Shown here: positions 1,698-64,000 of the stretch, piece by piece | How positions within the stretch are numbered: the stretch's first letter is position 1 | Layout: each line of letters starts with the position of its first letter | Assembly: GCA_002269645.1 (NCBI GenBank) | Contig: NIVC01000027.1 | Coordinates: 744,001-808,000, forward strand | DNA length: 64,000 nt | Direction of reading: 5' to 3' | Origin: Macrostomum lignano | Lineage: Eukaryota | Program-made: the position numbers and the translations under genes | The notes under the pieces: model-generated | Databases searched by the model: none | The model's input: only the letters and a program-made list of their open reading frames with translations | Told to the model about the DNA's origin: nothing

Positions 1698-3140
1698 GTG
1701 TGGCTCACCTGAACAATCAGAGAGGGGTGGCTCACCTGAAGGATCAGAAAGGGGTGGCTCACCTGAACAATCAGGGAGGGGTGGCTCACCTGAACAATCA
1801 GAAAGGGGTGGCTCACCTGAACAATCAGAAAGGGGTGGCTCACCTGAAGGATCAGAAAGGGGTGGCTCACCTGAACAATCAGAAAGGGGTGGCTCACCTG
1901 AAGGATCAGAAAGGGGTGGCTCACCTGAACAATCAGAAAGGGGTGGCTCACCTGAAGGATCAGAGAGGGGTGGCTTACCTGAACAATCAGAAAGGGGTGG
2001 CTCACCTGAACAATCAGAAAGGGGTGGCTTATCTGAACAAGCAGAAAGGGGTGGCTTATCTGAACAAGCAGAAAGGGGTGGCTCACCTGAACAATCAGAG
2101 AGGGGTGGCTCACCTGAACAATCAGAAAGGGGTGGCTCACCTGAACAATCAGAGAGGGGTGGCTTACCTGAACAATCAGAGAGCGGTGGCTCACCTGAAC
2201 AATCAGGGAGGGGTGGCTCACCTGAACAATCAGAAAGGGGTGGCTCACCTGAACAATCAGAAAGGGGTGGCTCACCTGAAGGATCAGAAAGGGGTGGCTC
2301 ACCTGAACAATCAGAAAGGGGTGGCTCACCTGAAGGATCAGAAAGGGGTGGCTCACCTGAACAATCAGAAAGGGGTGGCTTACCTGAACAATCAGAAAGG
2401 GGTGGCTTACCTGAACAATCAGAGAGGGGTGGCTTACCTGAACAATCAGAAAGGGGTGGCTCACCTGAACAATCAGAAAGGGGTGGCTTATCTGAACAAG
2501 CAGAAAGGGGTGGCTCACCTGAACAATCAGAGAGGGGTGGCTCACCTGAACAATCAGAAAGGGGTGGCTCACCTGAACAATCAGAAAGGGGTGGCTCACC
2601 TGAACAATCAGAGAGGGGTGGCTTACCTGAACAATCAGAGAGCGGTGGCTCACCTGAACAATCAGGGAGGGGTGGCTCACCTGAACAATCAGAAAGGGGT
2701 GGCTCACCTGAACAATCAGAAAGGGGTGGCTCACCTGAAGGATCAGAAAGGGGTGGCTCACCTGAACAATCAGAAAGGGGTGGCTCACCTGAACAATCAG
2801 AAAGGGGTGGCTCACCTGAACAATCAGAAAGGGGTGGCTCACCTGAACAATCAGAAAGGGGTGGCTCACCTGAACAATCAGAAAGGGGTGGCTCACCTGA
2901 ACAATCAGAAAGGGGTGGCTCACCTGAACAATCAGAGAGGGGTGGCAGCGATGGCTCACCTAAAGGAATAAGGAGGGCAGTGGCTCACCTGAAGGATCAA
3001 GGAGGGGTGGCTCACCTGAAGGATTAATGAGGGCGGTGGCTCACCTGAAGAATCAGGGAGGGCGGTGGCTCACCTGAAGAATCAGAGAGGGCGGTGGCTC
3101 ACCTGAAGAATAGGGAGGGCGGTGGCGCACCTGAATGATC
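1698..3140. repeat. 27-bp minisatellite, about 50 copies
   Basis: Unit GGGGTGGCTCACCTGAACAATCAGAAA, degenerating at the right end. Confidence 0.95.
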
Positions 3141-6160: not shown

Positions 6161-6775
6161 CAAATCATCAACTTATCAACTAGCAAGTTTTAGTTCATAC
6201 AATTATCCATTAACCTGCGTGTGTATAGATCCGCAAAAAAATTCAACACAACCATTACAGTTGCTAGGCGCTTTACAGGATGCAGTGGCTTGTTGTTCAA
6301 CCAACCAGCATATCTTCTTACTAGTGTGACTCAGTATAGCATCAGTGGGGACTGACTGACTGACTGACTGACTTGGTGAATTAATTCGATAATTGAAGTC
6401 TTTCAAAAATAACAAACTAAACATAGCAGGCAGACTCGCTGCATTCGAAAGCGATCGTCTTAGTGGCGCCTGCTAAATAAATATTGCCCCACCCACCTCA
6501 CCGCTTTCTGAATTTTCTTCTAGAAGAGAGGACAAGGAGACTCCCGGTTGCTTGATTCCTGGAGTTTGCACCAGCTAAACCCCCTTTATGCGGCGTATTA
6601 GGCAATGTGCTAGTACCGACACAGATCTGTGTTATTGTTTCTCTTGCTTGTGTGTTTCTTTGCTTTTTAAGTCTAGACTATATGCGGATGCGAGACACCT
6701 GGTTACTGAGTGTGATGATGTTGTATTAATTGTCTTGATGTCTTGATTGTGTCAAAGACGATTTGAAGGTCTTCA

Positions 6776-8647
<1,872 letters not shown>

Positions 8648-12960: not shown

Positions 12961-13914
12961 CTTCCCCCAGTAACAATTGATTTCCAACTGATTGCAACTC
13001 TTTCCCTTCTTAGTGCTAGTGTATCCGTAGTGACTCATCGTATTCAGACTTGCTTTGTACGTATTTCGGACCCATTACGATTACACACTGGCTGATGCGG
13101 CACAGTGCAGAGTCACTCACTTCACTTACAGCGGACCGCCCCCCCCTCTATCGTCAGTCTGTCAGTCAGTCAGTCAGCCAGTGCTATACAGTGCAACCTA
13201 TAACTATAACTAATAGGCATTGAAACCCCTGCCAAGCAGTCCCAGGTGTCAGATATTATGTATTACATATACGCTATAGAGGCAAGAGGTATTTATAGTA
13301 CGATGTTGATTCTTTCTTTCTTACGTTCGTTGCTTCCTTGATCTCTCCCCAAGCCCGCTCTGTGCATGGTGTACAGTCAAGATGGAGATTTTTATCCCCT
13401 AGAGAAAGTGACGCCCGGCGTAAACACAACAGTTTGAGAGGCTTATATGATGCATTCTAAAGAAGAGTGACTCCATCCGGGAGGCCAATGCTACTAATCT
13501 GTCACGAGTGCGGTCGCAAATATTATTTAATCCGTCGCTCTTATTTGTAGTAGCTCCCCCCTTCCCTGGTTCGTTCTGGAATTGTCTGCTGCACTGCTTT
13601 TTTTGACATTTTGTGACTTTTTTCTCTGCCTGCCTACCCGCCTGTCTGGCTGGGCTGGATGGAGGGACAGTGGCTCTTGACTTATCTTCATATCTGGACA
13701 CTTGTAAGCGCGCTTCCCGTCAAAAAAATTACCAGTAGGTAACGTACGTACTACTTAGATCATGCCAACTGGACCAGGCAGTGTTACTGAAACTGCGCTA
13801 ATGTATAGCATTCAAGCTTTCTTTATTGGCTCTGGAATAAAATATTTTACAATTGCACCATTTGGATACAAACTGACATTCATTTTGACTTGTTCTCGCT
13901 GACAATTGACACCT

Positions 13915-15505
13915 CCCAGTCTCAACTGACGCCCTACAGTCTCAGCTGACACCCTCCAGTCTCAACTGACACCCTCCAGTCTCTACTGACATCTTCCAGT
14001 CTCTACTGACACCCTCCAGTCTCAACTGACACCCTACAGTCTCAACAGACACCTTCCAGTCTCTACTGACACCTTCCAGTCTCAACTGACACCCTCTAGT
14101 CTCAACTGACACCCTCTAGTCTCAACTGACACCCTCCAGTCTCAGCTGACACCTCCCAGTCTCAACTGACACCCTCCAGTCTCAACTGACACCTTCCAGT
14201 CTCAGCTGACACCCTCCAGTCTCAGCTGACACCATCCAGTCTCAACTGACGCCCTCCAGTCTCAACTGACGCCCTCCAGTCTCAAGTGACACCCTCCAGT
14301 CTTAACTGAAACCCTCTAGTCTCAAGTGACACCCTCCAGTCTTAACTGACACCCTCTAGTCTCAACTGACACCCTCTAGTCTCAAGTGACACCCTCTAGT
14401 CTCAAGTGACACCCTCCAGTCTCAACTGACACCTTCCAGTCTCAACTGACACCTTCCAGTCTCAACTGACACCTTCCAGTCTCAACTGACACCCTCTAGT
14501 CTCAACTGACACCCTCCAGTCTTAACTGACACCCTCTAGTCTCAAGTGACACCCTCTAGTCTCAAGTGACACCCTCTAGTCTCAAGTGACACCCTCCAGT
14601 CTCAAGTGACACCCTCCAGTCTCAACTGACACCCTCTAGTCTCAACTGACACCCTCCAGTCTTAACTGACACCCTCTAGTCTCAAGTGACACCCTCTAGT
14701 CTCAAGTGACACCCTCTAGTCTCAACTGACACCCTCTAGTCTCAACTGACACCCTCCAGTCTCAACTGACACCCTCTAGTCTCAACTGACACCCTCCAGT
14801 CTTAACTGACACCCTCTAGTCTCAACTGACACCCTCTAGTCTCAAGTGACACCCTCTAGTCTCAAGTGACACCCTCCAGTCTCAACTGACACCCTCTAGT
14901 CTCAAGTGACACCCTCTAGTCTCAAGTGACACCCTCCAGTCTCAACTGACACCCTCTAGTCTCAAGTGACACCCTCTAGTCTCAACTGACACCCTCCAGT
15001 CTCAACTGACACCCTCTAGTCTCAACTGACACCCTCCAGTCTCAACTGACACCCTCCAGTCTCAGCTGACACCCTCCAGTCTCAACTGACGCCCTCCAGT
15101 CTCAACTGACAACCCTCCAGTCTCAACTGACACCCTCCAGTCTCAACTGACACCCTCCAGTCTCAAGTGACACCCTCTAGTCTCAAGTGACACCCTCCAG
15201 TCTCAACTGACACCCTCTAGTCTCAACTGACACCCTCCAGTCTCAACTGACACCCTCTAGTCTCAACTGACACCCTCCAGTCTTAACTGACACCCTCTAG
15301 TCTCAACTGACACCCTCTAGTCTCAAGTGACACCCTCTAGTCTCAAGTGACACCCTCCAGTCTCAACTGACACCCTCCAGTCTCAACTGACACCCTCAAG
15401 TCTCAACTGACGCCCTCCAGTCTCAACTGACACCCTCCAGTCTCAACTGACACCCTCTAGTCTCAACTGACACCCTCCAGTCTCAACTGACACCCTCCAG
15501 TCTCT
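13915..15505. repeat. 20-bp minisatellite, about 80 copies
   Basis: Unit GTCTCAACTGACACCCTCCA. Confidence 0.95.
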
Positions 15506-16399
15506 ACTAACACATAATCCACTAAACCCTTATGATTTCTTGATAATGCATAAGTATATAAAGTTTGCTAAATTTTTTAAACTTAATACCCTTTAAAACG
15601 CATCAAACCTTTGCCCAGATCCTGACCCAATCTGCCTTGAGACCAACGTCAACACGGGAATTCTGCAGCCTTGGAGGTCGCTAATTTTCAAGGTATTTTT
15701 GTGCATCTTCGTCATTAATTTTACAGTTTTTCAAAAGCCTCCACTTATTGTTGTCTTTCTGCATTTACTGAAAAAATAAAAGCAACACTTCCTTGCATTT
15801 CTACTTATACTAGTGACTTAGTAGTATGCTGTGATTGATTTAGTGAGTTTTTAGTTCTTTTTGGAGAAAACCAAGAAATTTGGTTTTCAAGCTTCAAAGC
15901 GATTCTGTTGGACCTATGCGGGTTTAATAAATCAATCAGTGAGCATTGCTTTTGCAACCACTTCTTACTCTGTTTTTCTGTTGACTTTATTTATTTCTGT
16001 TATTTGACTTTTTTATCTATTGTAGGACTGCTGAGTGGTGTTGGGACTAGCTATAGGCTAATCAGCTTTTATTTAAACACAGCTGTCAAACTCTCTCTAA
16101 CTGATTTATGAGGTCAAATTGGAAGTTGCGAACTCTCCTAGGGCAGGTAGGTAGGTAGGTAGGTAGGTAGAGAGTAGGTTTTTCGATATGTTTGTTTTGA
16201 GTGCTCTTGATTGTACACCCTCTGAACTTTTATCTGTGTTTTGCAGATTTTTTATTCATTGATGTCTGCATCCACTCATCCGAATTCGCAATCCTCCCGT
16301 TTCTGCTCTCCCCTGCCTCTCGAAGCTTCATCTGTCTCTTGTCGTCTGTCCTGCGCTCTCCTCCCATCTATTTAATTCTCTCTCCTCTCCTCCAATCTA

Positions 16400-22545: not shown

Positions 22546-24088
22546 ATGGCAACAGCGGCCCAAGCTCTGGTTGAGGCTGCTAAAAGCGGCAGCGCCAGTG
22601 GGGGCGGCGCTTCAGCTTCGGCATCTTCAGCGGCGACCACTGCAAGCGGCTCAACAGCTGCTGCACCGGCGGCGTCCTCAGCTCGCCAGATGCTGCTGTG
22701 TCGGGCGGCGGCGGCGGCTGCGGTGGCGGCTGCGGCTCAGCAGCAGCAGCAGCAGCATCAGCATTTGTTGAAACGCGAGCCGCCCGGTGTGAGCTCAGCA
22801 GACGAGGTGCTCCTGTCCCACCGGTTCTGCGACGATTCTGTGGATCAGGACGAGCTGGAGGAAGAGGAAGACGAGGAGGCGGCGCGGCGACGCAAGCCGC
22901 TCCCGGCGGTGTCCGCGTCGACAAGGAAAGCCGCTCCGCTGGCCGCCGTCTGCAGCATCCAGGGAAAGCCGGCTTCGTCATCATCCGCGGCAGGGGCGGT
23001 TCGCAGCAGCAGCAGCAACAGCAGCAGCAATAACAACAACAACAACAATGACGATCTGGCAGCCTCAGACGAGGTGAAGAACTACAACAACGAAGACGAC
23101 GAAGAGATCGATGTTGGCGGCGTCGGCTGCAGCGGAGACTCGTCTGGAGGCGGCGCCGATCCGGCCGAGAATCTGAAGCAGGACAAAACCGACCTGGTCG
23201 AGGAGGGCGAGAAAGCCGCTCTGTGGCGGCCGTATGAGACCACTGCGGTGGCCGCCGCGGCTCCGGTGCAGCCTCAGCTGCCGCATCATCAGCTGCCGCA
23301 TTCCATCGGGCACCTGCCGCCTCCGCCGCTGCACCGGCCGTTTGGCAGCAGCGCCGGAAGCTCCGCCTCCCAGCAGCAGCATCGGATCGACATGGCCGCA
23401 GCTGCCGCCGCCGCTGCCGCTTTTATGCCGCCGCCGACGCCGTATCATCCTCACGTGCACCAGCAGCAGCACCAGCAGCCTCATCACTCCCTGTTCACCG
23501 GCTCCCCGTCGCCGCAGCCTCCACTCGGCTATCCGAGCCATCACAGCATGCCGCAGCTGCACCAGTTCTTCAACCAGTACGCCGCTCTGGCCTCCTTCAT
23601 GCATCATCCGGCTGCCCCTCAGCGGCCCTCTCCCTTCCCTGCGCCTCATCACCAGCATCAGCAGCAGCAGCAGCAGCATTATCACAAGCAGCACCTGCAC
23701 AGGTCGCCTCCGCCTCCGGTGTCGCCACTGAGCTGCGCGACTGCTGCATCGTCGACTTCTTCGTCGAGTGCCGCCGCGGTTGTCCCGCCGACAATTAGTC
23801 GGGTGTCCGGCAGCGGGACCAGTTCTCAGCATCGAATCCAGCATCATCAGCAATCATTGAGTAAAGCCGCATTACGTCAGCAGCTTCATCGTCACCCGTC
23901 TCAGTCTCAGTCCCAGTCGCAGCAGCAGCAGCCGCAGTCGCAGGCGCTGTTTCCCAGCCATCCCATGCTTCCTTCGGTGCCTTCAGCGGCTGCGGCGGCG
24001 GCTGCGGCAGCTGCGGCGGCAGCAGCGGCGGCTTCGGGCATGCGACTGTTCGACAACCTGCAGCCGCACGCGTCCCCCTCGAGTTCCG
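22546..24088 (+). CDS. TCF: TCF/LEF (pangolin-like) transcription factor, coding exon 1
   Basis: ATG at 22546 with an in-frame TAG upstream at 22483. Encodes DDLAASDEVKNY...ENLKQDKTDLVEEGE (23050-23211), which resembles the TCF beta-catenin-binding motif. Ends at donor G|GTAAGT (24089), phase 1, matching the acceptor at 35835. Confidence 0.85.
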
Positions 24089-24219
24089 GTAAGTTGTCTG
24101 AGTTCATTTTTAGATTTTGTAGAAGTGTGTCCATTGCGTCACTTATTGGGTCAGCCTTTAAGGCAGTCGTGGGCTCCCTTTGCTATCGGTTTTGGCAAGT
24201 AATGCCAAAATGATTATAT

Positions 24220-35835: not shown

Positions 35836-37001
35836 GCCGTTCGCACCAGCAGCACAACCCCGCAGCGGTCTCCAGTCCCCTCAGCAACGGCGGCCATGGG
35901 CATCATCAGCCTCATCATCAACAGCAGCATCCACAGCCGCAGGCGCAGCAGCATTCGATGGCTTTACCGCAGAGCAACCGACTGCTGTCTCCAGTTGCCA
36001 GTCAGCAGCAGTCGCAGTACCGCAGTGCCGCAGCAGGTCGAGGCGGCGGCGGCCCCACTTCCAAGCCGACCAATCACGTGAAGAAGCCGCTAAACGCTTT
36101 CATGATCTTCATGAAGGAGCAGCGACCCGTGGTGGTGGCCGAGTGCACCCTGAAAGAGTCGGCAGCGATCAACCAGATCCTGGGCAGGAAGTGGCACTCG
36201 CTGAGTCGCGATGAGCAGGCCAAATACTACGAGCTGGCCCGCAAAGAGAAGGAGCTGCACTCCAAGCTCTACCCGAACTGGTCGGCCAGAGAGAACTACG
36301 GCGGCGCGTCGAGAAAGAAGAAGAAAAAGAAGCTGGGCCTCGGTCTGGACGGCGACGCCAAGAACCTGGGCGCATCGGCCAAGAAGTGCCGGGCGGTGTA
36401 CGGTCTGGACCGGCAGGAGCTGTGGTGCAAGCCCTGCAAACGGAAGAAGAAATGCGTGAAGTTCGCGCCCGACTCTGACGATGGGGCAACTGCGGCGACG
36501 GCTCTCGGTGGCGCTGGCGGCGGCGCGATGGCCGCTTCTGGCGTCGGAGCGGCGGTGCTCATGCACCAGCTGCACCAGCACCAGCTGCACCAGCTCCAGC
36601 ATCAGCAGCTTCATCAGGACCAGCCTGAGCTGCAGCCGCCAAGGAAGAAATTCCGGCCCTTGGACAGCCGCCTCATCAGAGATGCTGAAGCTGATGACGA
36701 CCAGCTAGACGATGATGACTCCGATGATGATGGAGACGACGGTGATGAGGCTGAGGAAGATGCTGAGGCTGGTTTTGAGCAGTGCGACTCTGCGGATTTC
36801 GCCAGCGAGAGCCGGGAGGCTGAGGCGGCGGCCACGGCTGCTGCAGAGGCTGGCATAGTTGATGAAGAAGACTATGGCGACTATCAGGATGAAGCTGAGA
36901 ACTGCTCCCGAGAGGTGCATTCTGCGGGAGTCAAAATCGAGGCCGAGGATGTCAAGCCGATGTCGCCACCGCCTCAGTCAGCAGGAGCAGAAGAGGTTTA
37001 A
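35836..37001 (+). CDS. TCF: TCF/LEF coding exon 2: HMG box, basic tail, C-clamp, acidic tail
   Basis: Acceptor CCGCAG|GC, phase 1, with an open frame into the supplied ORF 35958-37001. [17 protein letters not shown]...[35 protein letters not shown] is a TCF-type HMG box, followed by RKKKKKK and [25 protein letters not shown]. Stop TAA at 36999-37001 overlaps an AATAAA. Confidence 0.95.
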
Positions 37002-38629: not shown

Positions 38630-39640
38630 CTCTGCCCTCTCCCCGCCTCTGCCCCCTCTCCCCGCCTCTGCCCCTCTCCCCGCCTCTGCCCCTCTCCCCG
38701 CCTCTGTCCCCTCTCCCCGCCTCTGCCCCCTCTCCCCGCCTCTGTCCCCTCTCCCTGCCTCTGCCCCCTCTCCCCGCCTCTGCCCCTCTACCCGCCTCTG
38801 CCCCTTCTCCCCGCCTCTGCCCCCTCTCCCCGCCTCTTCCCCCTCTCCCCGCCTCTGCCCCCTCTCCCCGCCTCTGTCCCCTCTCCCCCGCCTCTCCCCC
38901 CTCTCCCCGCCTCTGCCCCCTCTCCCCGCCTCTGCCCCCTCTCCCCGCCTCTGCCCCTCTCCCCGCCTCTGCCACTCTCCCCGCCTCTGCCCCCTCTCCC
39001 CGCCTCTGCCCCTCTCCCCGCCTCTGCCCCTCTCCCCGCCTCTGCCCCTCTCCCCGCCTCTGCCCCTCTCCCCGCCTCTGCCCCCTCTCCCCGCCTCTGC
39101 CCCTCTCTCCGCCTCTGTCCCCTCTCCCCGCCTGATCTTCCCCCTCTCCCCGCCTCTGCCCCCTCTCCCCGCCTCTGCCCCTCTCCCCGCCTCTGCCCCC
39201 TCTCCCCGCCTCTGCCCCCTCTCCCCGCCTCTGCCCCTCTCCCCGCCTCTGCCCCTCTCCCCGCCTCTGCCCCCTCTCCCCGCCTCTGCCCCCTCTTCCC
39301 GCCTCTGCCCCCTCTCCCCGCCTCTGCCCCCTCTCTCCGCCTCTGTCCCCTCTCCCCGCCTGATCTTCCCCCTCTCCCCGCCTCTGCCCCTCTCCCCGCC
39401 TCTGCCCCCTCTCCCCGCCTCTGCCCCCTCTCCCCGCCTCTGCCCCCTCTTCCCGCCTCTGCCCCCTCTCCCCGCCTCTGCCCCTCTCCCCGCCTCTGCC
39501 CCCTCTCCCCGCCTCTGCCCCCTCTCCCCGCCTCTGCCCCTCTCCCCGCCTGATCTTCCCCCTCTCCCCGCCTCTGCCCCCTCTCCCCGCATCTTCCCCC
39601 TATCCCCGCCTGATCTGCCCCCTCTCCCCGCCTCAGCCTC
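38630..39640. repeat. C-rich 18-19-bp minisatellite
   Basis: Unit CTCTCCCCGCCTCTGCCC(C). Confidence 0.93.
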
Positions 39641-51579: not shown

Positions 51580-54500
51580 TCATTCTGCTGCAGTTATCTT
51601 TATTCCTCCTCCCGCTGCCCCACTGGCTCGAATCTGGGTGATTTCTTCCACCGATTTCTTGGCGTCTCGCAGAAGCCTCGCCCGAGTCTGCCAGTTTGGC
51701 TGCTCTTCTTGTTTCTGCTTATTTATCAACTCTTCAACGTACTCATCGGCAGTGCTTAGGAGGTACTGGCGATGAGCCAGCTGCTCAAGATCCTGCATGC
51801 ACTGATGCATTTTTACTAAGCTGTTTGATAAGTGCTCCCTGTGTTCGTCTATATCGTCTTTGAGACGGCTTTCGACCTGCTTTTTACGCCGTTTACCGGG
51901 ATACCGCCGTGTGATGGTTTCCGCTGTCCTCTCCTCTTCTTTCTCGACGGTTTCTAAATATTTCTTGCCTGGCTTATGCTCAGAGAGACTGCAACCTCCT
52001 GGGCAGGCTGTGCAGTCGATGTCCGGCTCAGACTGATCTCTCCAATATGCTGATTGCTCCAAAATCCAGCACGTCATGTTGCACTTTTTGCAATTTATAG
52101 CAACTTGGTTCCTGGGTAAATCTGAATTTGATTTTTGAACTTTTTTTACCAGGAATTTAGTTTTGCCTGGGTTACCAGCTGTTTTACTGACTAGCTCTAG
52201 CTCCTTCTCAAATATGGCAAGTTTTTCCAAGGTTTCTTTCAGCTTCTTCATCAGGATCGCAAAAGAAACCTCGAGTTGTCTTGGATTACTTGGGCTGTCT
52301 TTGGCTTTTTGTTTCGATCGGAGATGGACACCGATTCGTGTCTTTTCCATCGCTTCAAACAGCTCAAGGTAACTGTGCTCATCCTCACACCAGGCTCTCG
52401 CCTTTGCATCCAGCTTCATCTTCTCTTCTAGTTTTGCTTTTAACGAGAGATTTGAATCCCGCTTCAAGCTATCACTGTCGATATTGTCAGAGTACAGAAC
52501 TCCACTATTGAGTTTGAGAAACTTTCTGAATGACACGTTGCCGTCTTTGAGATCGGGTTGTGCCAAAGTCGCATAGCCACCAGCGTAAGTCAAAACTGGC
52601 AGCGAGATCTGTTCGATTTCCACGCCGAACAGTGACGTAATTTCTTTAAAAACGGTTATCTGAGGATCGGAACGTTTGCTTTGCGATGCCCTCAGGACGA
52701 AGCAAAAGCCGTGCAACAGTCCGGTGATTCCTGGAATTGCAGAAGTTCCTCCATCGCCGAGCACCTCCGCGATTCTCCTCTCAATTTGATCACCTTCGTT
52801 CGGGTTTAGTCTGTTTCGAAATTCTGGGGCAACAATAAGGGTCAGCGGGGTGTCCATAGCGCTCCTGCAGCTTTCATCGGCACCGCCAGTGTTCACAGGG
52901 AATAATGTGTACACCATTATGTCTTTTTCACTGCTTTCTTGAGCCAGCCGGAACCGGAAGTTTTGCGAATACGGAACTCTGTAGAATGCATTGGCGATTC
53001 CGTTGATAAACTCGGTCAATCCCGAGTCTTCTAAGCCGACAACGAGAAGAATCTTTGGAGGCATGACGAAAGCTCCGCCCTCAGCAACGCTGAATGACAC
53101 TGGACCGACGCTGGAGTCATCGTTTTTCTTCACCACATTCAGATTGAAAATATCTCCGGAATAGTTCGCTCCACTCCCAGCTGAGTCTTTGTAGCTGTAG
53201 TTGTCTCGAACAAATTGAAAACAACAAGTTTCAACCGTCTCGGCTTCTGGAATGCTGAGCTCGACTGGGTCCATGGAGTCGGTCTGCGGATTCAGGTTAG
53301 AGACTGGGTTCAAGGAGTCGATCTGCGGATTCAGGTTAGAGACTGGGTCCAAGGAGTCGGTCTGCGGATTCAGGTTAGAGACTGGGTCCAAGGAGTCGGT
53401 CTGCGGATGCAGGTTAGAGACTGGGTCCAAGGAGTCGGTCTGTGGATGCAGGTTAGAGACTGGGTCCAAGGAGTCGGTCTGCGGATTCAGGTTAGAGACT
53501 GGGTCCAAGGAGTCGGTCTGTGGATGCAGGTTAGAGACTGGGTCCAAGGAGTCGGTCTGTGGATGCAGGTTAGAGACTGGGTCCAAGGAGTCGGTCTGCG
53601 GATTCAGGTTAGAGACTGGGTCCAAGGAGTCGGTCTGTGGATGCAGGTTAGAGACTGGGTCCAAGGAGTCGGTCTGCGGATGCAGGTTAGAGACTGGGTC
53701 CAAGGAGTCGGTCTGCGGATGCAGGTTAGAGACTGGGTCCAAGGAGTCGGTCTGCCGATTCAAGTTAGAGACTGGGTCCAAGGAGTCGGTCTGCGGATGC
53801 AGGTTAGAGACTGGGTCCAAGGAGTCGGTCTGCCGATTCAAGTTAGAGACTGGGTCCAAGGAGTCGGTCTGCCGATTCAAGTTAGAGACTGGGTCCAAGG
53901 AGTCGGTCTGCCGATTCAAGTTAGAGACTGGGTCCAAGGAGTCGGTCTGCGGATGCAGGTTAGAGACTGGGTCCAAGGAGTCGGTCTGCAGATGCAGGTT
54001 AGAGACTGGGTCCAAGGAGTCGGTCTGCCGATTCAAGTTAGAGACTGGGTCCAAGGAGTCGGTCTGCCGATTCAAGTTAGAGACTGGGTCCAAGGAGTCG
54101 GTCTGCGGATGCAGGTTAGAGACTGGGTCCAAGGAGTCGGTCTGCGGATGCAGGTTAGAGACTGGGTCCAAGGAGTCGGTCTGCCGATTCAAGTTAGAGA
54201 CTGGGTCCAAGGAGTCGGTCTGCCGATTCAAGTTAGAGACTGGGTCCAAGGAGTCGGTCTGCCGATTCAAGTTAGAGACTGGGTCCAAGGAGTCGGTCTG
54301 CGGATGCAGGTTAGAGACTGGGTCCAAGGAGTCGGTCTGCAGATGCAGGTTAGAGACTGGGTCCAAGGAGTCGGTCTGCCGATTCAAGTTAGAGACTGGG
54401 TCCAAGGAGTCGGTCTGCCGATTCAAGTTAGAGACTGGGTCCAAGGAGTCGGTCTGCGGATGCAGGTTAGAGACTGGGTCCAAGGAGTCGGTCTGCGGAT

Positions 54501-54808
54501 GCAGGTTAGAGACTGGGTCCAAGGAGTCGGTCTGCCGATTCAAGTTAGAGACTGGGTCCAAGGAGTCGGTCTGCGGATGCAGGTTAGAGACTGGGTCCAA
54601 GGAGTCGGTCTGCCGATTCAAGTTAGAGACTGGGTCCAAGGAGTCGGTCTGCCGATTCAAGTTAGAGACTAGTCGACTAAGTTTTGTTTCGTAGCCCCTC
54701 AACTCGGAAAGCACAAAAAAGATTTTTGCTTCCCCTATAGAATTTATTGTGCTCTTGTGCTCTACAAATGCGCATTCATTCATACTCTCAAATTTCTTAG
54801 GACGATAG
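51580..54808 (-). CDS. Large terminal exon: 13-aa tandem repeat, septin/AIG1-like (pseudo)GTPase domain, coiled coil and Cys-rich C-terminus
   Basis: The supplied 1067-aa ORF extends upstream to a TAG|C acceptor at 54808. The unique part (about 51580-53270) has KILLVVGLEDSGLTEFINGIAN...FRFRL...LTLIVAPEF...GFCFVLRASQ...FKEITSLFG...VLTY and NCKKCNMTC...CTACPGGC...H. This matches my recollection of an invertebrate/fish septin-like GTPase family and has not been searched. Confidence 0.7.
53275..54670 (-). repeat. 39-bp minisatellite, about 36 copies, in frame in the large ORF (NLHPQTDSLDPVS)
   Basis: Minus-strand unit AACCTGCATCCGCAGACCGACTCCTTGGACCCAGTCTCT, with no indels breaking the frame. 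Confidence 0.95.
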
Positions 54809-55063
54809 CTAATTCAGTCAGTTTCCTAGCTATGGGGTTCGGAAAACAAGAGCGACTTACAGGCTCTTTGCAGTCCACTTCAAAATACGCCGTGCCGTCG
54901 TATCTGAAAATTTAGCAGACATTGACAACGTTTTCAGATGCCATGATACTGCCTTTCTAAAAATTACAATTCTTTCTATGATCAGAAATCCGAACGCATT
55001 CTTTTTTTAATTCATAGCAATCCTAATCGATAGTTCGAATGGTAGTCTGTTCCCCTTACTCAC

Positions 55064-56355
55064 TTGGCAAGCAACTCTGCCAGCTGAAATGCCTCGGCTT
55101 TGGGTTGCGCCAAATCCATTGCAGTTCTGCCATACTCGTTCTTCAGACTCCAATCGGCACCTCTCCCTAGCAGGATGCTCCCAACCTCTGAGGCTTGCGC
55201 AGGAGCCTCCACGGCGACCGAAATGAGAGGAGTGTTGCCATAGATGTCCTGAGAATTTACAGAGGCTCCTGCGTCAATCAGAACGGAAACGGCGACCAAG
55301 TTGCCGCTGCGAGCTGCCACATGCAGGCAGCTCAATGACTCAGTAGAGGCGCATGTTGGATCTGCCAGTGACAGCAGCTTCTGCCACAAAGCTTTGTTGC
55401 TGCAGTTGGTATTCTTGGCGGCCCACATTGCTGCGGTGAATCCATTGGGGTCAGACAGGTTGCAGTTGTCAAGATTGGCAGCTCTAAGCAAGCCCTCAAA
55501 GTCACCGGCTTGAGCCAGCTGCTTCAGCCTCTGCCGAGCTGCTTCCTCCTGCAGTGGAGAATGCGGTGCAGTAAGGCCTGTCCTTTTATCACCCGACCTG
55601 TCAGGCACTCACCTCACTAGTCAGACCGCTGATCAAACCGTACTTATCAACAACGAGTCTCATCTCTCTGAATTGAATTAGTAACTGAAATTGTTACTAT
55701 TGACATGATTTCAATTCTGATTTCAACAATTATCAGAAATGCAAACAACTCACCGCTCGATGAGATTGGCTATATCACCTTTGCGCAACTTGGCGAGTGT
55801 CAACGCTGTTCGACCGTGCTTGTCTTTCAGTCCCAAAAGCTGCTCTCTCTTGGAGTTGCCTTTACTTTGGCATTCATTGTACTTAAATTGTCGCAGCTGG
55901 TGCAGCAGATGCTTGACACACCTCCACGAACCAGCCAGAACCGCTTCCATCAGGGGGGTCGTGCCCTGCTCGTTCTGCAGCCACTTGCTCTCAAAAGGTA
56001 GCAGTACAAGAATCTGGAGGTTGTCAGCTCTGGCTGCCAGGTGAGCAGCCGTGTCGCCAGCCCAGTCAGTTGCGAAAGGGTCAAAGTTCTGAGCTATTAA
56101 GTACATTACGCACTTTTCTGTTCCGGCCGATCTTTGCTGAGCAGTTTCGGCCAAACACATGAGGACAGTCTTCTTCTTACTTGGTTTCAATAAGTTCATT
56201 ATCTGTTGGAGGTCACCTTTGTTTATTAACTCGACCAGTTTCTGCAAGATTCAAATGTACCAATGTAAGTTCTAGGTTTTGAAGGGTTAACTAGACAATC
56301 AAGGAACAAAAATAGATCTAATTACTTGTACTTCATTGAAATCTCCTTCAGCCAT
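55064..56355 (-). CDS. Ankyrin-repeat exons, probably the 5' part of the same gene as 51580-54808
   Basis: Exons 56355-56326 (MAEGDFNEVQ), 56241-55754, 55667-55613 and 55548-55064, with GT-AG introns and consistent phases 0/2/0/2. Ankyrin motifs: GDTAAHLAA, GTTPLMEAV, HGRTALTLA, NGFTAAMWAA, SCLHVAA, YGNTPLI, YGRTAMDLA. Confidence 0.85.
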
Positions 56356-58611
56356 TTTTAATCTGGTGCCAAAAACCTGTGCGCTGATGGCCGCTGGGGT
56401 GTTTCTTGGAAAGCGTCCAGACCGGCACGCAGGTTCGCGGCGTCGCTCAGTCGAAGTCCTGTGATTGTGGCGCATTTGAGTGCATGAAGTTAGTAGAAAC
56501 TATCAGTCTAGTACCCCCCCCCCCACCACTTGGGGGCGGCCAATAGGCAAGGGACGAAAATTATTTATGTGAATTTTGTTTGCGTTTACATCTCAGCAAT
56601 TCCCTTGTAAGCCTTGACATCTCAGAGATTCCCCTGTAAGCCTTGACATCTCAGCAATACCCCCTCCCAAGCCTTGACATCTTAGCAATTCCCCCAAGCC
56701 ATCTACGAGCTTTTCTTACTTATTTACCTAGATGGTCTGCGATCTGAAATCGCCATCGTATGTCTAGATTAAATTAACCATTGCAGGTATCAAGCCACTT
56801 AATCGTAAGTTAATCGTGAATTTAATTTTCCGATTATATATTTTATATATTTAGCATTTACCAGTAACTTTGTTATTAAGTTGATTTCCTAAGGCAAGTT
56901 CTTGCTTGTATATTAATAAATTTTGCGTAAAAAACTCACATCGAAAGTTGTAGAATTATTCCAATGTATAATGAAAAGTATAATTACGAGTATAAGTATC
57001 ATAAACCAGTTTGCTGGCGTCGATAAAATAGTTTTTAGCCTGGCCGTTTAGCTCGTGGGCATTCTCAGCATTTATTTGTTGTGCTCTGAGAACAATAACT
57101 TTCTCAAACTGCCCGATCTCTAAAGAGTAGCTGTCTAGTTAATCGGCACTTTAGATTAACTCGTCAGTCTAAAACTAGTCATGAGAGCATAACTGCCTAA
57201 TGAAATGAGACCCGGGGTACCCAACGGTGCGAAAGTAACAATAGCAAGTTTGTCTGCTCACTTATCAGTCTAAGTCAAGCATTTTGCATCAAAATAACTG
57301 CAGTGTACACAATTTATGAGCGTCATGTGACAACCCTTTATGAGCAGCTGAGTATACTGGACGGGGAGTGAGCTGTCAACTGTCGAGAGAGAGAGAGGGA
57401 GAGAGAGAGGAGGGTACCTCCAATCTCAGGCACTGACACGGTAGAGAGTTCGAAAGTCAGAAAGGACTGAAAAAAGTCAATTTAATTTGAGTTGCCGATA
57501 TTTCGGAATTATTATGTTTATAATCTATTTAATATAATAATCTATTTCGAAATAGATCATACATCTTTTTGATTTCGTTTAGAAAACTGAACTTCTTAAA
57601 AGTCACATCCAACTGGAATGCGAGTAGTAGGCATGATGACAGTTCTAGCACAGACCCTTTCCCATTTAGATCAACATCTACTAAAATCTATTGACACACA
57701 ATGCGCTTACATCTAAAATCAGCTATCACAATGCAATACCTACACCTGTTGATCTAAATTGGAAAATTTTAAGACTACCCCATTCCCAAAAATCGACATC
57801 TACTAAGATCCATTCATACCCAATGCGCCGAAATTTAAAATCAGCTATCACAGTGCAACCTACAACTGTTTATCTAAGGAAAATTAACTATAAAGCTTAA
57901 GAAAACATTCGCATCCCAAGACCAACTCCCAAGACTACATGCCTAAACTTCCCTTAGACTAAAAATTATTTATTTATAGCACTTAGTCATTGCATTGGTT
58001 TTAGTCATCATTGGTTTTAGTCATTGCATATAAAAAAGCCATGCACAGCTCTGCGCAGATGTCACTGTTAAGATCTTGAAGTATAAAGTCTGAGCGGAAA
58101 ATTTTCTTCCCTTTTAAGTAATTTCTCAATTCTTCAGGTGGAGCCGTAGATATAGCATAGATCAACAGCTATGCTATTCAGCTATAATCACCTAGTTACA
58201 GTTAGTATGAAATATATTTCCATACGTTTTGTTGCATATCGTGGGAAAGTAAGACACTGTCTAGTTTTAGGCACAGTCTGGTTTTCAGGTGAGAGAATGC
58301 AGAAGAGCAGAGAGAATTTTGCCCAGCCTTCCTATTTACCCAAGACTCCAGACTGACAATCCGCAAACAGTATCAAAGTCTGCACACTGCCAAACATAGC
58401 GAGTTACTCTGCAGTGAAAACAGCCAGCCGAGTCTGCAGGTTGTTTTTTAACTCGGTAGACCCCGTATTGGGCGCAGTTGGCTAATACCACATTCCTTTT
58501 TTAGTTTGTGGCTAGGAAGGCTATCTCTCATAAAGACCTCGGAAGTTCGGAATATCCAATTCATTGGCTAAATCTTGAAGAAAAGTATTGGTTGTCATTT
58601 TTTAGAATTTT

Positions 58612-60227: not shown

Positions 60228-61099
60228 AAGCATTGAAATTTCAGTAATTCTCTCTAAGAGTCATTATAGCACTACTACAGCATTATAGCGATTCCTTGCA
60301 AGCCTCAACATCGTAGGGATTCCCAAATGAATCTCTTAACTTTGACATGAAGCTTCTTTTATTTTTTACATTACGCTTTTTTATCAGCGATCCCTCCCCT
60401 GAGGAGGCATCAAATAATGTAATAAAAAGTTTTCAATAAACTACATGTAGCTTCTGACTTTAGCCTTGAAATCTCATTTATACCCCGTGAGCCTTGACAT
60501 CTCAGCTATTCCCCCCGTAAGCCTTAACATGTCAGCGATGGCCCCCATAAACCTTGAAATCTGAAAAATCCCCTGCTAACCTTGAAACCCGATAAAATAT
60601 AACCCTCAACCCACACCTGACCTAAACCTAACTTTAACCCAACCTAAAGCCTTGAAATCTCAGCAATTCTTCTCCCCTAAGCCTTGACATTTTAGTGATT
60701 CCTTCTTTAAGAATCACAGCACTATAACGATTTCCACCTAGCTTTGACATCGTAGCAATTCCCAAACGAATCTTTTAACTTCGACATGACTTTTCTTTTA
60801 TGTATACATAGTGCTACTTTTATTTTTTACATGACTCTTCTTCTATCAGCGCCCCCCCCGTGACGAGCCAACAAAGAATGCAATAAAAAATGGAGTAAAG
60901 TACATGAACTTTGAAGTAGCTTCTGACTTTTGCTTTGACATCTCAGAAACCCCCCCCCGTAATCTCAGTTATTCTCTGAGAGCCTTTACGTCTCAGTTTT
61001 TCTCCCCAGCACAGCATTATAGTTGCATTTAATTTTTACATGAACCCTTCATGTCTGACATGACGTTTCTTTTATTCTACCATGACGCTTCCTAATTTT

Positions 61100-64000
61100 T
61101 TAAATGACACTTTCATTAGTTTTAAATGAGGCTTCTATGATTTTTTCTTGACGCTTCTATGATTTTTACATGATGCTTCTATGATTTTTATATGACGTTT
61201 CTATAATTGTTTACATGACGCTTCTATGATTGTTTACATGACGCTTCTATGATTGCTTACATGACGCTTCTATGATTTTTTACATGACGCTTCTATGATT
61301 GTTTACATGACGCTTCTACGATTTTTTACATGACGCTTCTATGATTGTTTACATGACGCTTCTACGATTTTTACATGACGCTTCTATGATTGTTTACATG
61401 ACGCTTCTATGATTGTTTACATGACGCTTCTATGATTTTTAAATGACGCTTCTATGATTTTTACATGACGCTTCTATGATTTTTATATGACGTTTCTATG
61501 ATTGTTTACATGACGCTTCTATGATTGTTTACATGACGCTTCTATGATTGCTTACATGACGCTTCTATGATTTTTTACATAACGCTTCTATGATTGTTTA
61601 CATGACGCTTCTACGATTTTTTACATGACGCTTCTATGATTTTTACATGACGCTTCTACGATTTTTTACATGACGCTTCTATGATTGTTTACATGACGCT
61701 TCTATGATTGTTTACATGACGCTTCTATGATTGTTTACATGACGCTTCTATGATTGTTTACATGACGCTTCTACGATTTTTTACATGACGCTTCTATGAT
61801 TGTTTACATGACGCTTCTATGTTTGTTTACATGACGCTTCTATGATTGTTTACATGACGCTTCTATGATTTTTTACATGACGCTTCTATGATTGTTTACA
61901 TGACGCTTCTATGATTGTTTACATGACGCTTCTATGATTGTTTACATGACGCTTCTACGATTTTTTACATGACGCTTCTATGATTGTTTACATGACGCTT
62001 CTATGATTTATATGACGTTTCTATGATTGTTTACATGACGCTTCTATGATTGTTTACTTGACGCTTCTATGATTGCTTACATGACGCTTCTATGATTTTT
62101 TACATAACGCTTCTATGATTGTTTACATGACGCTTCTACGATTTTTATATGACGCTTCTATGATTGTTTACATGACGCTTCTACGATTTTTTAATGACGC
62201 TTCTATGATTTTTTACATGACGCTTCTATGATTTTTTAAATGACGCTTCTATGATTGTTTACATGACGCTTCTACGATTTTTTACATGACGCTTCTATGA
62301 TTGTTTACATGACGCTTCTATGTTTGTTTACATGACGCTTCTATGATTGTTTACATGACACTTCTATGATTTTTTACATGACGCTTCTATGATTGTTTAC
62401 ATGACGCTTCTATGATTTTTTACATGGCGCTTCTATGATTTTTATATGACGCTTCTACGATTTTTTACATGACGCTTCTATGATTTTTTAAATGACGCTT
62501 CTATGATTTTTTACATGACGCTTCTATGATTGTTTACATGACGCTTCTATGATTGTTTACATGACGCTTCTATGATTTTTTAAATGACGCTTCTATGATT
62601 GTTTACATGACGCTTCTGCGATTTTTATATGACGCTTCTATGATTTTTTAAATGACGCTTCTATGATTGTTTACATGACGCTTCTATGATTTTTTACATG
62701 ACGCTTCTATGATTTTTTAAATGACGCTTCTATGATTTTTATATGACGCTTCTACGATTTTTTACATGACGCTTCTATGATTGTTTACATGACGCTTCTA
62801 TGATTTTTTACTTGACGCTTCTATGATTGTTTACATGACGCTTCTACGATTTTTATATGACGCTTCTATGATTGTTTTTATGACGCTTCTATGATTTTTT
62901 ACATGACGCTTCTATGATTGTTTACATGACGCTTCTATGATTGTTTACATGACGCTTCTACGATTTTTATATGACGCTTCTATGATTTTTAAAAGACGCT
63001 TCTACGATTTTTTAATGACGCTTCTATGATTTTTTACATGACGCTTCTATGATTTTTTAAATGACGCTTCTATGATTTTTATATGACGCTTCTACGATTT
63101 TTTACGTGACGCTTCTATGATTGTTTACATGACGCTTCTATGATTTTTTACTTGACGCTTCTATGATTGTTTACATGACGCTTCTACGATTTTTATATGA
63201 CGCTTCTATGATTGTTTTTATGACGCTTCTATGATTTTTTACATGACGCTTCTATGATTGTTTACATGACGCTTCTATGATTGTTTACATGACGCTTCTA
63301 CGATTTTTATATGACGCTTCTATGATTTTTTAAAAGACGCTTCTACGATTTTTTAATGACGCTTCTATGATTTTTTACATGACGCTTTTATGATTTTTAC
63401 ATGACGCTTCTATGATTGTTTACATGACGCTTCTATACTTTTTTACATGACGCTTGTATGATTTTTTTACATGACGCTTCTATGATTTTTTAAATGACGC
63501 TTCTATGATTTTTATATGACGCTTCTACGATTTTTTACGTGACGCTTCTATGATTGTTTACATGACGCTTCTATGATTTTTTACTTGACGCTTCTATGAT
63601 TGTTTACATGACGCTTCTACGATTTTTATATGACGCTTCTATGATTGTTTTTATGACGCTTCTATGATTTTTTACATGACGCTTCTATGATTGTTTACAT
63701 GACGCTTCTATGATTGTTTACATGACGCTTCTACGATTTTTATATGACGCTTCTATGATTTTTTAAAAGACGCTTCTACGATTTTTTAATGACGCTTCTA
63801 TGATTTTTTACATGACGCTTCTATGACTTTTTAAATGACGCATCTATGATTTTTATATGACGCTTCTATGATTTTTTACATGACGCTTCTATGATTGTTT
63901 ACATGACGCTTCTATGATTTTTTAAATGACGCTTCTATGATTTTTTAATGACGCTTCTATGATTTTTTACATGACGCTTCTATGATTTTTTACATGACGC
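61100..64000. repeat. 22-23-bp satellite, more than 120 copies, running off the window
   Basis: Unit ATGACGCTTCTATGATTGTTTAC / ATGACGCTTCTATGATTTTTTAC. Confidence 0.97.

Follow-up and report, generated by a model that had tools for sequence, protein, structure and literature searches.

A 64,000-nucleotide stretch of the genome of the free-living flatworm Macrostomum lignano (contig NIVC01000027.1, positions 744,001 to 808,000; hereafter the window, whose own numbering is used throughout) carries on its minus strand, at 56355-51580, a six-exon gene in which ankyrin repeats are joined to a septin/AIG1-like G domain with degenerate nucleotide-binding motifs, and in which the boundary between intron 5 and exon 6 appears, from its sequence, to have been amplified into a minisatellite of 36 units of 39 bp. 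We hold these three elements jointly, the gene structure, the pseudo-GTPase and the junction minisatellite, with high confidence at the least. The explanation that we favor overall, and consider likely, is that of a six-exon ankyrin/dead-G-domain gene with an intronic minisatellite, a default product of 934 amino acids (aa) and an adaptor role. The gene would represent a clean and recent case of a septin/GIMAP-type GTPase turned pseudo-GTPase, with four motifs lost, the N-terminus swapped and selection still acting on it. What most deserves to be followed is the presence of a functional 3' splice site in 36 in-frame copies.

Structure of the gene

The gene was delineated by mapping three proteins to the window and reading the exon borders: P0001, a UniRef protein that is the annotated model for the locus, and the paralogues P0002 and P0003 (BOX15_Mlig023044g1). 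Its parts are as follows, with slashes marking splice borders.

56355-56326, minus: exon 1; ATG at 56355, MAEGDFNEVQ, donor GTAATT; collinear with the P0002 N-terminus MAEGGFDEAR
56241-55754, minus: exon 2, first ankyrin block; Pfam Ank_2 E=5.7e-20; borders ttgcag/ and /gtgagt
55667-55613, minus: exon 3, 55 nt, EMRLVVDKYGLISGLTSE; found in P0001, P0002 and P0003
55548-55064, minus: exon 4, second ankyrin block; Pfam Ank_2 E=4.3e-25; phase-2 donor AA/GTGAGT at 55064/55063
54903-54861, minus: exon 5, 43-nt micro-exon (K)YDGTAYFEVDCKEP; borders tttcag/ and /gtaagt; phase-0 end
54860-54669, minus: intron 5, unique 5' part; holds TAG/C at 54808 and the ATG of a 1067-aa open reading frame (ORF) at 54783
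54668-53265, minus: minisatellite, 36 x 39 bp; intron-5/exon-6 junction units, each with a phase-0 acceptor
53283-51580, minus: exon 6 as in P0001 (TDSMDPVELS... to the stop TAA); linker, pseudo-G domain, coiled coil, Cys cluster, C-terminal helices

All introns are of the GT..AG type, and the joined coding sequence has 934 codons with its only stop at the end and is collinear with P0002 (931 aa). The micro-exon encodes the 14-aa YDGTAYFEVDCKEP and is kept in P0001, P0002 and P0003, as well as at L001, the locus of a paralogue. From the N- to the C-terminus, the protein consists of ankyrin repeats (about six), a disordered linker and the septin/AIG1-like G domain, which is followed by a coiled coil, a Cys/His cluster and C-terminal helices. 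Over its C-terminal 569 aa, the 1067-aa ORF (54783-51580, minus strand) is 100% identical to P0001 and 89-90% identical to P0002 and P0003. Since the annotated P0001, P0002 and P0003 all join the ankyrin and the GTPase-like parts, we read these parts, at the sequence level, as one gene. Annotation so far records only the ankyrin repeats; the fusion is real and lineage-specific. P0003 comes from the RNA-seq-based Mlig_3_7 annotation (StringTie/TACO), and the junction between ankyrin repeats, micro-exon and pseudo-GTPase therefore has transcript support in a paralogue.

A previous sequence-only reading of this locus proposed that four phase-consistent ankyrin exons end in a phase-2 donor, which is spliced from 55064 to the TAG/C acceptor at 54808 to give a product of about 1428 aa. 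The exons and the donor stand, as their GT..AG borders and the Ank_2 matches confirm. The junction was rejected, because it skips the conserved micro-exon and reads through a stretch that is intron, with a closed frame, in L001. Position 54808 lies within intron 5, and the homologous L001 stretch contains an in-frame TAA and indels of 17, 1, 1 and 1 nt, one of the single-nucleotide indels falling within the reading frame proposed for the 54808 acceptor. The p-distance between the window and L001 over this stretch (0.147) matches that of the gene's synonymous sites (dS 0.143), as it should in an intron. The closed frame and the intron-like divergence therefore leave both the junction and the 1428-aa product unsupported, and the six-exon model gives 934 aa instead.

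P0001 differs from the six-exon model at both ends. It has no start methionine, skips exon 1 and takes 26 aa from a stretch that is 5' untranslated region in our model (56456-56379), and it ends in …EEIRQPVGQREEE where the ORF and the paralogues read …EEITQIRASGAAGG… (51640-51580). These ends are due either to alternative splicing or to an artefact of the prediction. A 29-bp tandem repeat of 3.6 copies (56588-56693) is located in the putative promoter/5' region, about 230 bp before the start codon.

An amplified splice junction

The array at 54668-53265 was reported by TRF with a period of 39 bp, 36.1 copies, 95% matches and 0% indels, and direct parsing resolved it into 36 units at exact 39-bp spacing, in seven sequence variants that are arranged in higher-order blocks. 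The unit consists of the last 20 nt of intron 5 (TCTCTAACyTGmATCnnCAG) followed by the first 19 nt of exon 6 (ACCGACTCCtTGGACCCAG). All 36 units keep a branch-point-like CTAAC and a CAG acceptor, and every one of these acceptors is in phase 0, in frame with the phase-0 end of exon 5. At L001, intron 5 is 225 nt long and ends ...agTCTCTAACtggaatccgCAG/ACCGACTCAATGGGCCCAGtc..., with the junction in single copy. In the window, unit 1 directly adjoins the ancestral intron, and unit 36 runs on into the ancestral exon. Neither the L001 locus nor the P0002 and P0003 proteins have the array, and in P0001 it is spliced out. Because the unit equals the local junction sequence, which is single copy in L001, we interpret the array as a young minisatellite that arose by local tandem amplification of the 3' splice junction. 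Insertion of a dispersed satellite at the locus is ruled out by the same identity between unit and junction.

In a model of the P0001 type, the array forms the 3' part of a 1.58-kb intron 5. The product has 934 aa if the last acceptor is used, as it is in P0001, and would have 934 + 35 x 13 = 1389 aa, in frame, if the first is used, while intermediate acceptors would yield a ladder of products between them. The sequence-only reading took the array for a protein linker of about 36 x 13 aa. The array of 36 x 39 bp is real, but it does not qualify as an established linker: it is an amplified intron/exon boundary, the repeat does not occur in P0001, P0002 or P0003, L001 has it in single copy, and a search with the micro-exon joined to the repeats found the 13-aa repeat in none of the proteins of a 5.8-billion-sequence database.

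That the array is translated at least in part, through splicing of exon 5 to a repeat acceptor at or near its start, is in our view rather unlikely. Translation would give up to 1389 aa, with 35 extra copies of TDSLDPVSNL(N/H)(R/P/L)Q forming a 455-aa disordered spacer. The conservation of CTAAC and CAG in every unit and the common phase of the acceptors speak for it, as does the position of the unit 1 acceptor in the exact upstream intron context of the authentic acceptor of the paralogue. The insertion point is a further argument, since residues 1-20 of the C-terminal structural model have low confidence (pLDDT <50) and the linker there is probably disordered, as judged from that model. A period that is a multiple of 3 and an open frame also favor it modestly: the two would coincide by chance with an estimated probability of ~0.24, which gives a likelihood ratio of at most about 4 for a translated and tolerated array. 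Against translation, P0001 skips the array, P0002 and P0003 have a single unit, and no known protein in the database searched contains the repeat. Moreover, periods that are multiples of 3 are no commoner than chance among the arrays of the window (about one third). The open frame is weak evidence of coding, because stops are missing from three of the six frames over the length of the array, and the plus strand has ORFs of 480 and 485 aa there. The lesson for annotation is that, where the period of a minisatellite is divisible by 3, a frame that stays open across it is no evidence that it is coding.

A more elaborate idea is that the array works as a splice-acceptor ladder, in which stochastic or regulated choice of the 3' splice site, together with germline changes in copy number, would generate graded isoforms with a spacer of 0 to 35 x 13 aa. 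We regard this as decidedly doubtful; if true, the ladder would be a new route to length diversity in a putative defence-family protein. The array may in addition be viewed as a natural experiment in 3' splice-site choice. It resembles intronic or junctional minisatellites with splice signals (variable number tandem repeats) in its 39-bp period, its 36 near-identical copies, its higher-order variant blocks and its repeat-rich genome. The difference is that the unit here straddles a functional 3' splice junction, and thereby multiplies the branch-point-like motif and the acceptor 36 times, all in frame. We know of no characterized equivalent, though no search aimed at one was made.

A septin/AIG1-like domain without its nucleotide motifs

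The region downstream of the linker contains the following features, with positions of helices given in residues of the AlphaFold2 (AF2) model.

53055-52504, minus: septin/AIG1-like pseudo-G domain; AF2 pLDDT 79.4; Foldseek GIMAP1, septin-3, Toc33/34; phmmer E=3e-20
53037-53014, minus: degenerate G1/P-loop GLEDSGLT (family GATGAGKS), from the alignment
52833-52822, minus: degenerate G3 VAPE (family DTPG), from the alignment
52590-52579, minus: degenerate G4 TYAG (family TFAD; Asp to Gly), from the alignment
52443-52183, minus: two long predicted helices, coiled-coil hairpin; AF2 helices 283-316 and 336-369
52092-51976, minus: Cys/His cluster in a beta-rich region; 7/10 conserved family Cys/His kept
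51924-51586, minus: C-terminal helical region; AF2 helices 469-505, 514-528, 533-555 and 561-568; pN/pS 0.26, the lowest of the gene

The degenerate Walker A and G3 motifs noticed in the sequence-only reading were confirmed by comparison with the relatives, which have GATGAGKS at G1 and DTPGFGDT where the window protein reads VAPEFRNR. The switch-I SQAxSQT segment (conserved Q..SQT, with the switch-I Thr) is deleted in the window gene. The changes in G1, switch I, G3 and G4 are all common to P0002 and P0003. The family cluster of eight Cys and two His residues retains 7 of its 10 positions in the window protein and 8 of 10 in the paralogues; the losses in the window protein are C408 to W (still C in the paralogues), C419 to Q and the deletion of one His. 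Overall, 40 of the 103 strongly conserved family columns are kept.

A phmmer search of a large protein database with the C-terminal 569 aa recovered proteins annotated as Septin/AIG1 (E=3e-20 to 5e-18), with matches covering 82-83% of the query, and the same search against PDB sequences gave no match. The AF2 model, based on a 78-sequence alignment, is of good quality, with a pLDDT of 79.4 and a pTM of 0.66; it replaced a model from a 6-sequence alignment (pLDDT 49.6), which was not used. Its best PDB matches in Foldseek are GIMAP1 (3v70), septin-3 (4z54) and Toc33/34 (3def/3bb1), with probability 1.0 and TMt 0.41-0.58, and the family profile matches septins by sequence at E ~1e-7. The structure prediction thus yields the expected G-domain fold, with a predicted coiled coil and the Cys cluster after it, and the catalytically dead septin/AIG1-like domain proposed earlier is borne out by the motif loss, the homology of the relatives and the predicted fold. 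The model supports a septin/GIMAP/Toc-type G fold with dead nucleotide motifs, and predicts that the fold persists despite the loss of the motifs. With septins, GIMAP (AIG1) proteins and Toc33/34 of the septin-like TRAFAC branch, the domain shares the predicted fold and the profile match to septins, whereas it lacks G1-G4 and has no septin unique element or polybasic region to compare.

Selection and maintenance

Selection was assessed by comparing the window copy with L001, using pN/pS and a one-sided Fisher p.

Whole gene (824 codons): pN/pS 0.44, p=3e-8
Ankyrin: pN/pS 0.39, p=6e-5
Post-G region: pN/pS 0.42, p=1e-3
Pseudo-G segment: pN/pS 0.63, p=0.09

Between the two copies no nonsense substitution is observed where ~16.5 would be expected under neutrality (P ~7e-8), and all splice sites of the window gene are intact. 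Given the whole-gene pN/pS, the lack of nonsense changes, the intact splice sites and the transcript-supported P0003, these sequence comparisons indicate that the gene is maintained under purifying selection, with constraint relaxed on the dead G domain and on the Cys cluster (pN/pS 0.82).

The opposite reading, in which the locus is a decaying, functionless copy and the dead motifs, the eroded Cys cluster and the invading minisatellite are signs of pseudogenization, is hardly credible to us. It could draw on the small share of conserved family positions kept (40/103), on C408W being found in the window copy alone, on the raised pN/pS of the G domain and the Cys cluster, and on the frameshift and stop in a sister canonical gene at the locus L002. 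A decaying gene would, however, scarcely combine a 934-codon ORF that is intact in three copies with a whole-gene pN/pS of 0.44, intact splice sites and a transcribed paralogue.

Relatives and origin

Relatives were collected by an exhaustive profile search of representative clusters (50% identity), a word-seeded profile search having added one protein only. The family comprises 5051 representative clusters at E<=1e-3, of which 1597 reach E<=1e-30. The window protein scores 856 bits against the family profile, is collinear with the family from the G domain to the C-terminus, and matches P0004 at E=3e-20 over 82% of the query. Members include P0004, a 'Septin-type G domain-containing protein' of the ostracod Darwinula stevensoni, a hypothetical protein of the coral Porites harrisoni, and BOX15_Mlig029040g1 and BOX15_Mlig016867g1 of M. 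lignano; the homologues P0004 to P0009 score for Septin and AIG1. The analysis thus indicates a very large family of invertebrate GTPases (~1600 clusters at 50% identity, E<=1e-30), and targeted full-text literature searches found no description of an invertebrate MACPF/FN3/septin-like GTPase family.

The family consensus runs, from N to C, KVLMVVGATGAGKSTLINGM..., SQAxSQT..., LTIIDTPGFGDT..., TFADG..., FKFNNSALF..., two long helices, TNCLxCNxTCHxPC...CxAM...CxVCPxxCxWxxH and LKPNPLS..YIDLLI. In an alignment of 156 sequences (155 relatives and the window protein), a canonical G1 is present in 146 and DxxG in 151. Among the 155 relatives, the full-length domain without the motifs is confined to the Macrostomum clade of P0001, P0002 and P0003, and the same trio alone has ankyrin repeats. 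Canonical relatives typically carry an N-terminal FN3, and several also have stonustoxin-type MACPF, helical and thioredoxin-like modules; the window gene contains none of these and has ankyrin repeats in their place. It shares with the unnamed family the domain order (G domain, helices, Cys cluster, helices) and collinear homology, and differs in lacking the GTP-binding motifs and three of the ten Cys/His residues and in its ankyrin N-terminus. The frequent fusion of the canonical family to stonustoxin-type MACPF makes it a candidate family of pore-forming or immune effectors.

The nearest canonical relative is P0005 of M. lignano, located on L002 (NIVC01002140.1) and 52% identical across G1-G3. 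P0005 shares clade insertions with the window gene (LFPVNTGGxDxSCRSAMD and a long SD..LKRDSNLS..K..LDAKA..W segment) and keeps GETGTGKS, DTPGFGDT, TFAD and the Cys cluster. Its locus (L002 9380-10720) encodes a stonustoxin-type helical domain, FN3 and the GTPase. Right after DTPGFGDT the sequence continues in another frame and contains an in-frame stop (QKIA*KYK), and the annotated 485-aa model is truncated; this canonical gene is either a pseudogene or affected by assembly indel errors. Divergent family members (~22% identity) lie at L001 2316-3293 and L002 16109-17458, within 8-10 kb of the paralogue and the canonical gene, respectively. The family is locally clustered in M. lignano.

The simplest history that these sequences suggest begins in the large, unnamed invertebrate family of canonical GTPases with MACPF, helical, thioredoxin and FN3 N-termini. 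A lineage-specific duplication would have been followed, in the Macrostomum lineage, by the exchange of this N-terminus for ankyrin repeats, and the loss of G1, switch I, G3 and G4 would have preceded the divergence of the copies represented by P0001, P0002 and P0003 (dS about 0.14).

Function and weight of the evidence

The protein may act as a nucleotide-independent adaptor or regulatory subunit. Its ankyrin repeats would serve to bind a partner or cargo, and pairing with canonical GTPase paralogues would fall to the dead G domain and the coiled coil, in the manner of degenerate septins in hetero-oligomers. This proposal draws on two parallels. GIMAP and Toc GTPases act through G-domain dimers. 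Septin pseudoGTPases persist as subunits of hetero-oligomers, and most of them still bind GTP, having lost hydrolysis alone (Hussain et al. 2023, PMC10731463). Like these septins, the window protein is predicted to keep a GTPase fold after degeneration of the pocket, its gene is under selection, and its likely role is in assembly rather than catalysis. It differs from them in lacking the P-loop Lys, the switch-I Thr, the Asp and Gly of G3 and the Asp of G4; the loss of all these pocket residues predicts that it binds no nucleotide.

Several points weigh against the explanation that we favor. Pfam returned no family at E<=1 for the C-terminal 569 aa, so that the expected direct profile match to Septin (PF00735) or AIG1 (PF04548) did not appear. 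The sequence-only reading had named the lack of a P-loop NTPase profile match as grounds for giving it up; we set the null result aside because the homology reached through the relatives (E=3e-20) and the fold search both identify the domain. The idea that the loss of the P-loop is itself conserved under purifying selection holds in part: the loss also occurs in P0002 and P0003, and constraint is significant over the entire gene, but for the pseudo-G segment alone purifying selection is not significant (0.63, p=0.09). The view that GTP binding, beyond catalysis, has almost certainly been lost is read from the motifs, and the adaptor or heteromer mechanism is a pure analogy that we put forward as a tentative possibility. 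The choice of the last of 36 acceptors, and with it the 934-aa default product, is taken from the model P0001, which, with its odd 5' and 3' ends, may be partly an ab initio prediction.

The sequence-only reading went further and saw here an architecture typical of innate-immune receptors, in which a dead GTPase scaffold carries an ankyrin sensor by way of a spacer of tunable length. The MACPF-type pore-forming modules of the canonical relatives and the large, expanded and clustered invertebrate family would fit such a receptor, and GIMAP and septin relatives have immune roles in vertebrates. Pfam, on the other hand, finds no STAND/NACHT or other signaling domain in the protein: the NLR/STAND core (NACHT or NB-ARC) is missing, and the NTPase-like fold is of the septin/GIMAP type. 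In addition, the 55064-to-54808 junction that would attach the spacer is wrong, and the spacer is only putatively coding. The receptor architecture therefore rests on analogy and on the MACPF-type partners of the relatives, and we consider it highly unlikely.

Other features of the window

Minisatellites are frequent around the gene. The window contains ~35 separate arrays with periods of 14-150 bp and 5-130 copies, of which examples are listed here.

1700-3135, 6821-8579, 13903-15513, 38635-39638 and 61058-64000: minisatellite arrays

The arrays explain the strong GC-skew blocks at 6-16 kb, and several of them give long spurious ORFs on both strands (e.g., 6703-8619). Simple and tandem repeats make up 15% of the M. 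lignano genome, and its assembly contains much duplicated sequence (PMC5730564). Elsewhere in the window, a 555-aa ORF with an ATG (22546-24213, plus strand) lies in a block rich in GC (59%), and Pfam gave no match for it. A 347-aa ORF at 35958-37001 (plus strand) contains an HMG box (Pfam HMG_box, E=1.2e-21) and is probably a Sox/HMG transcription-factor gene or an exon of one.

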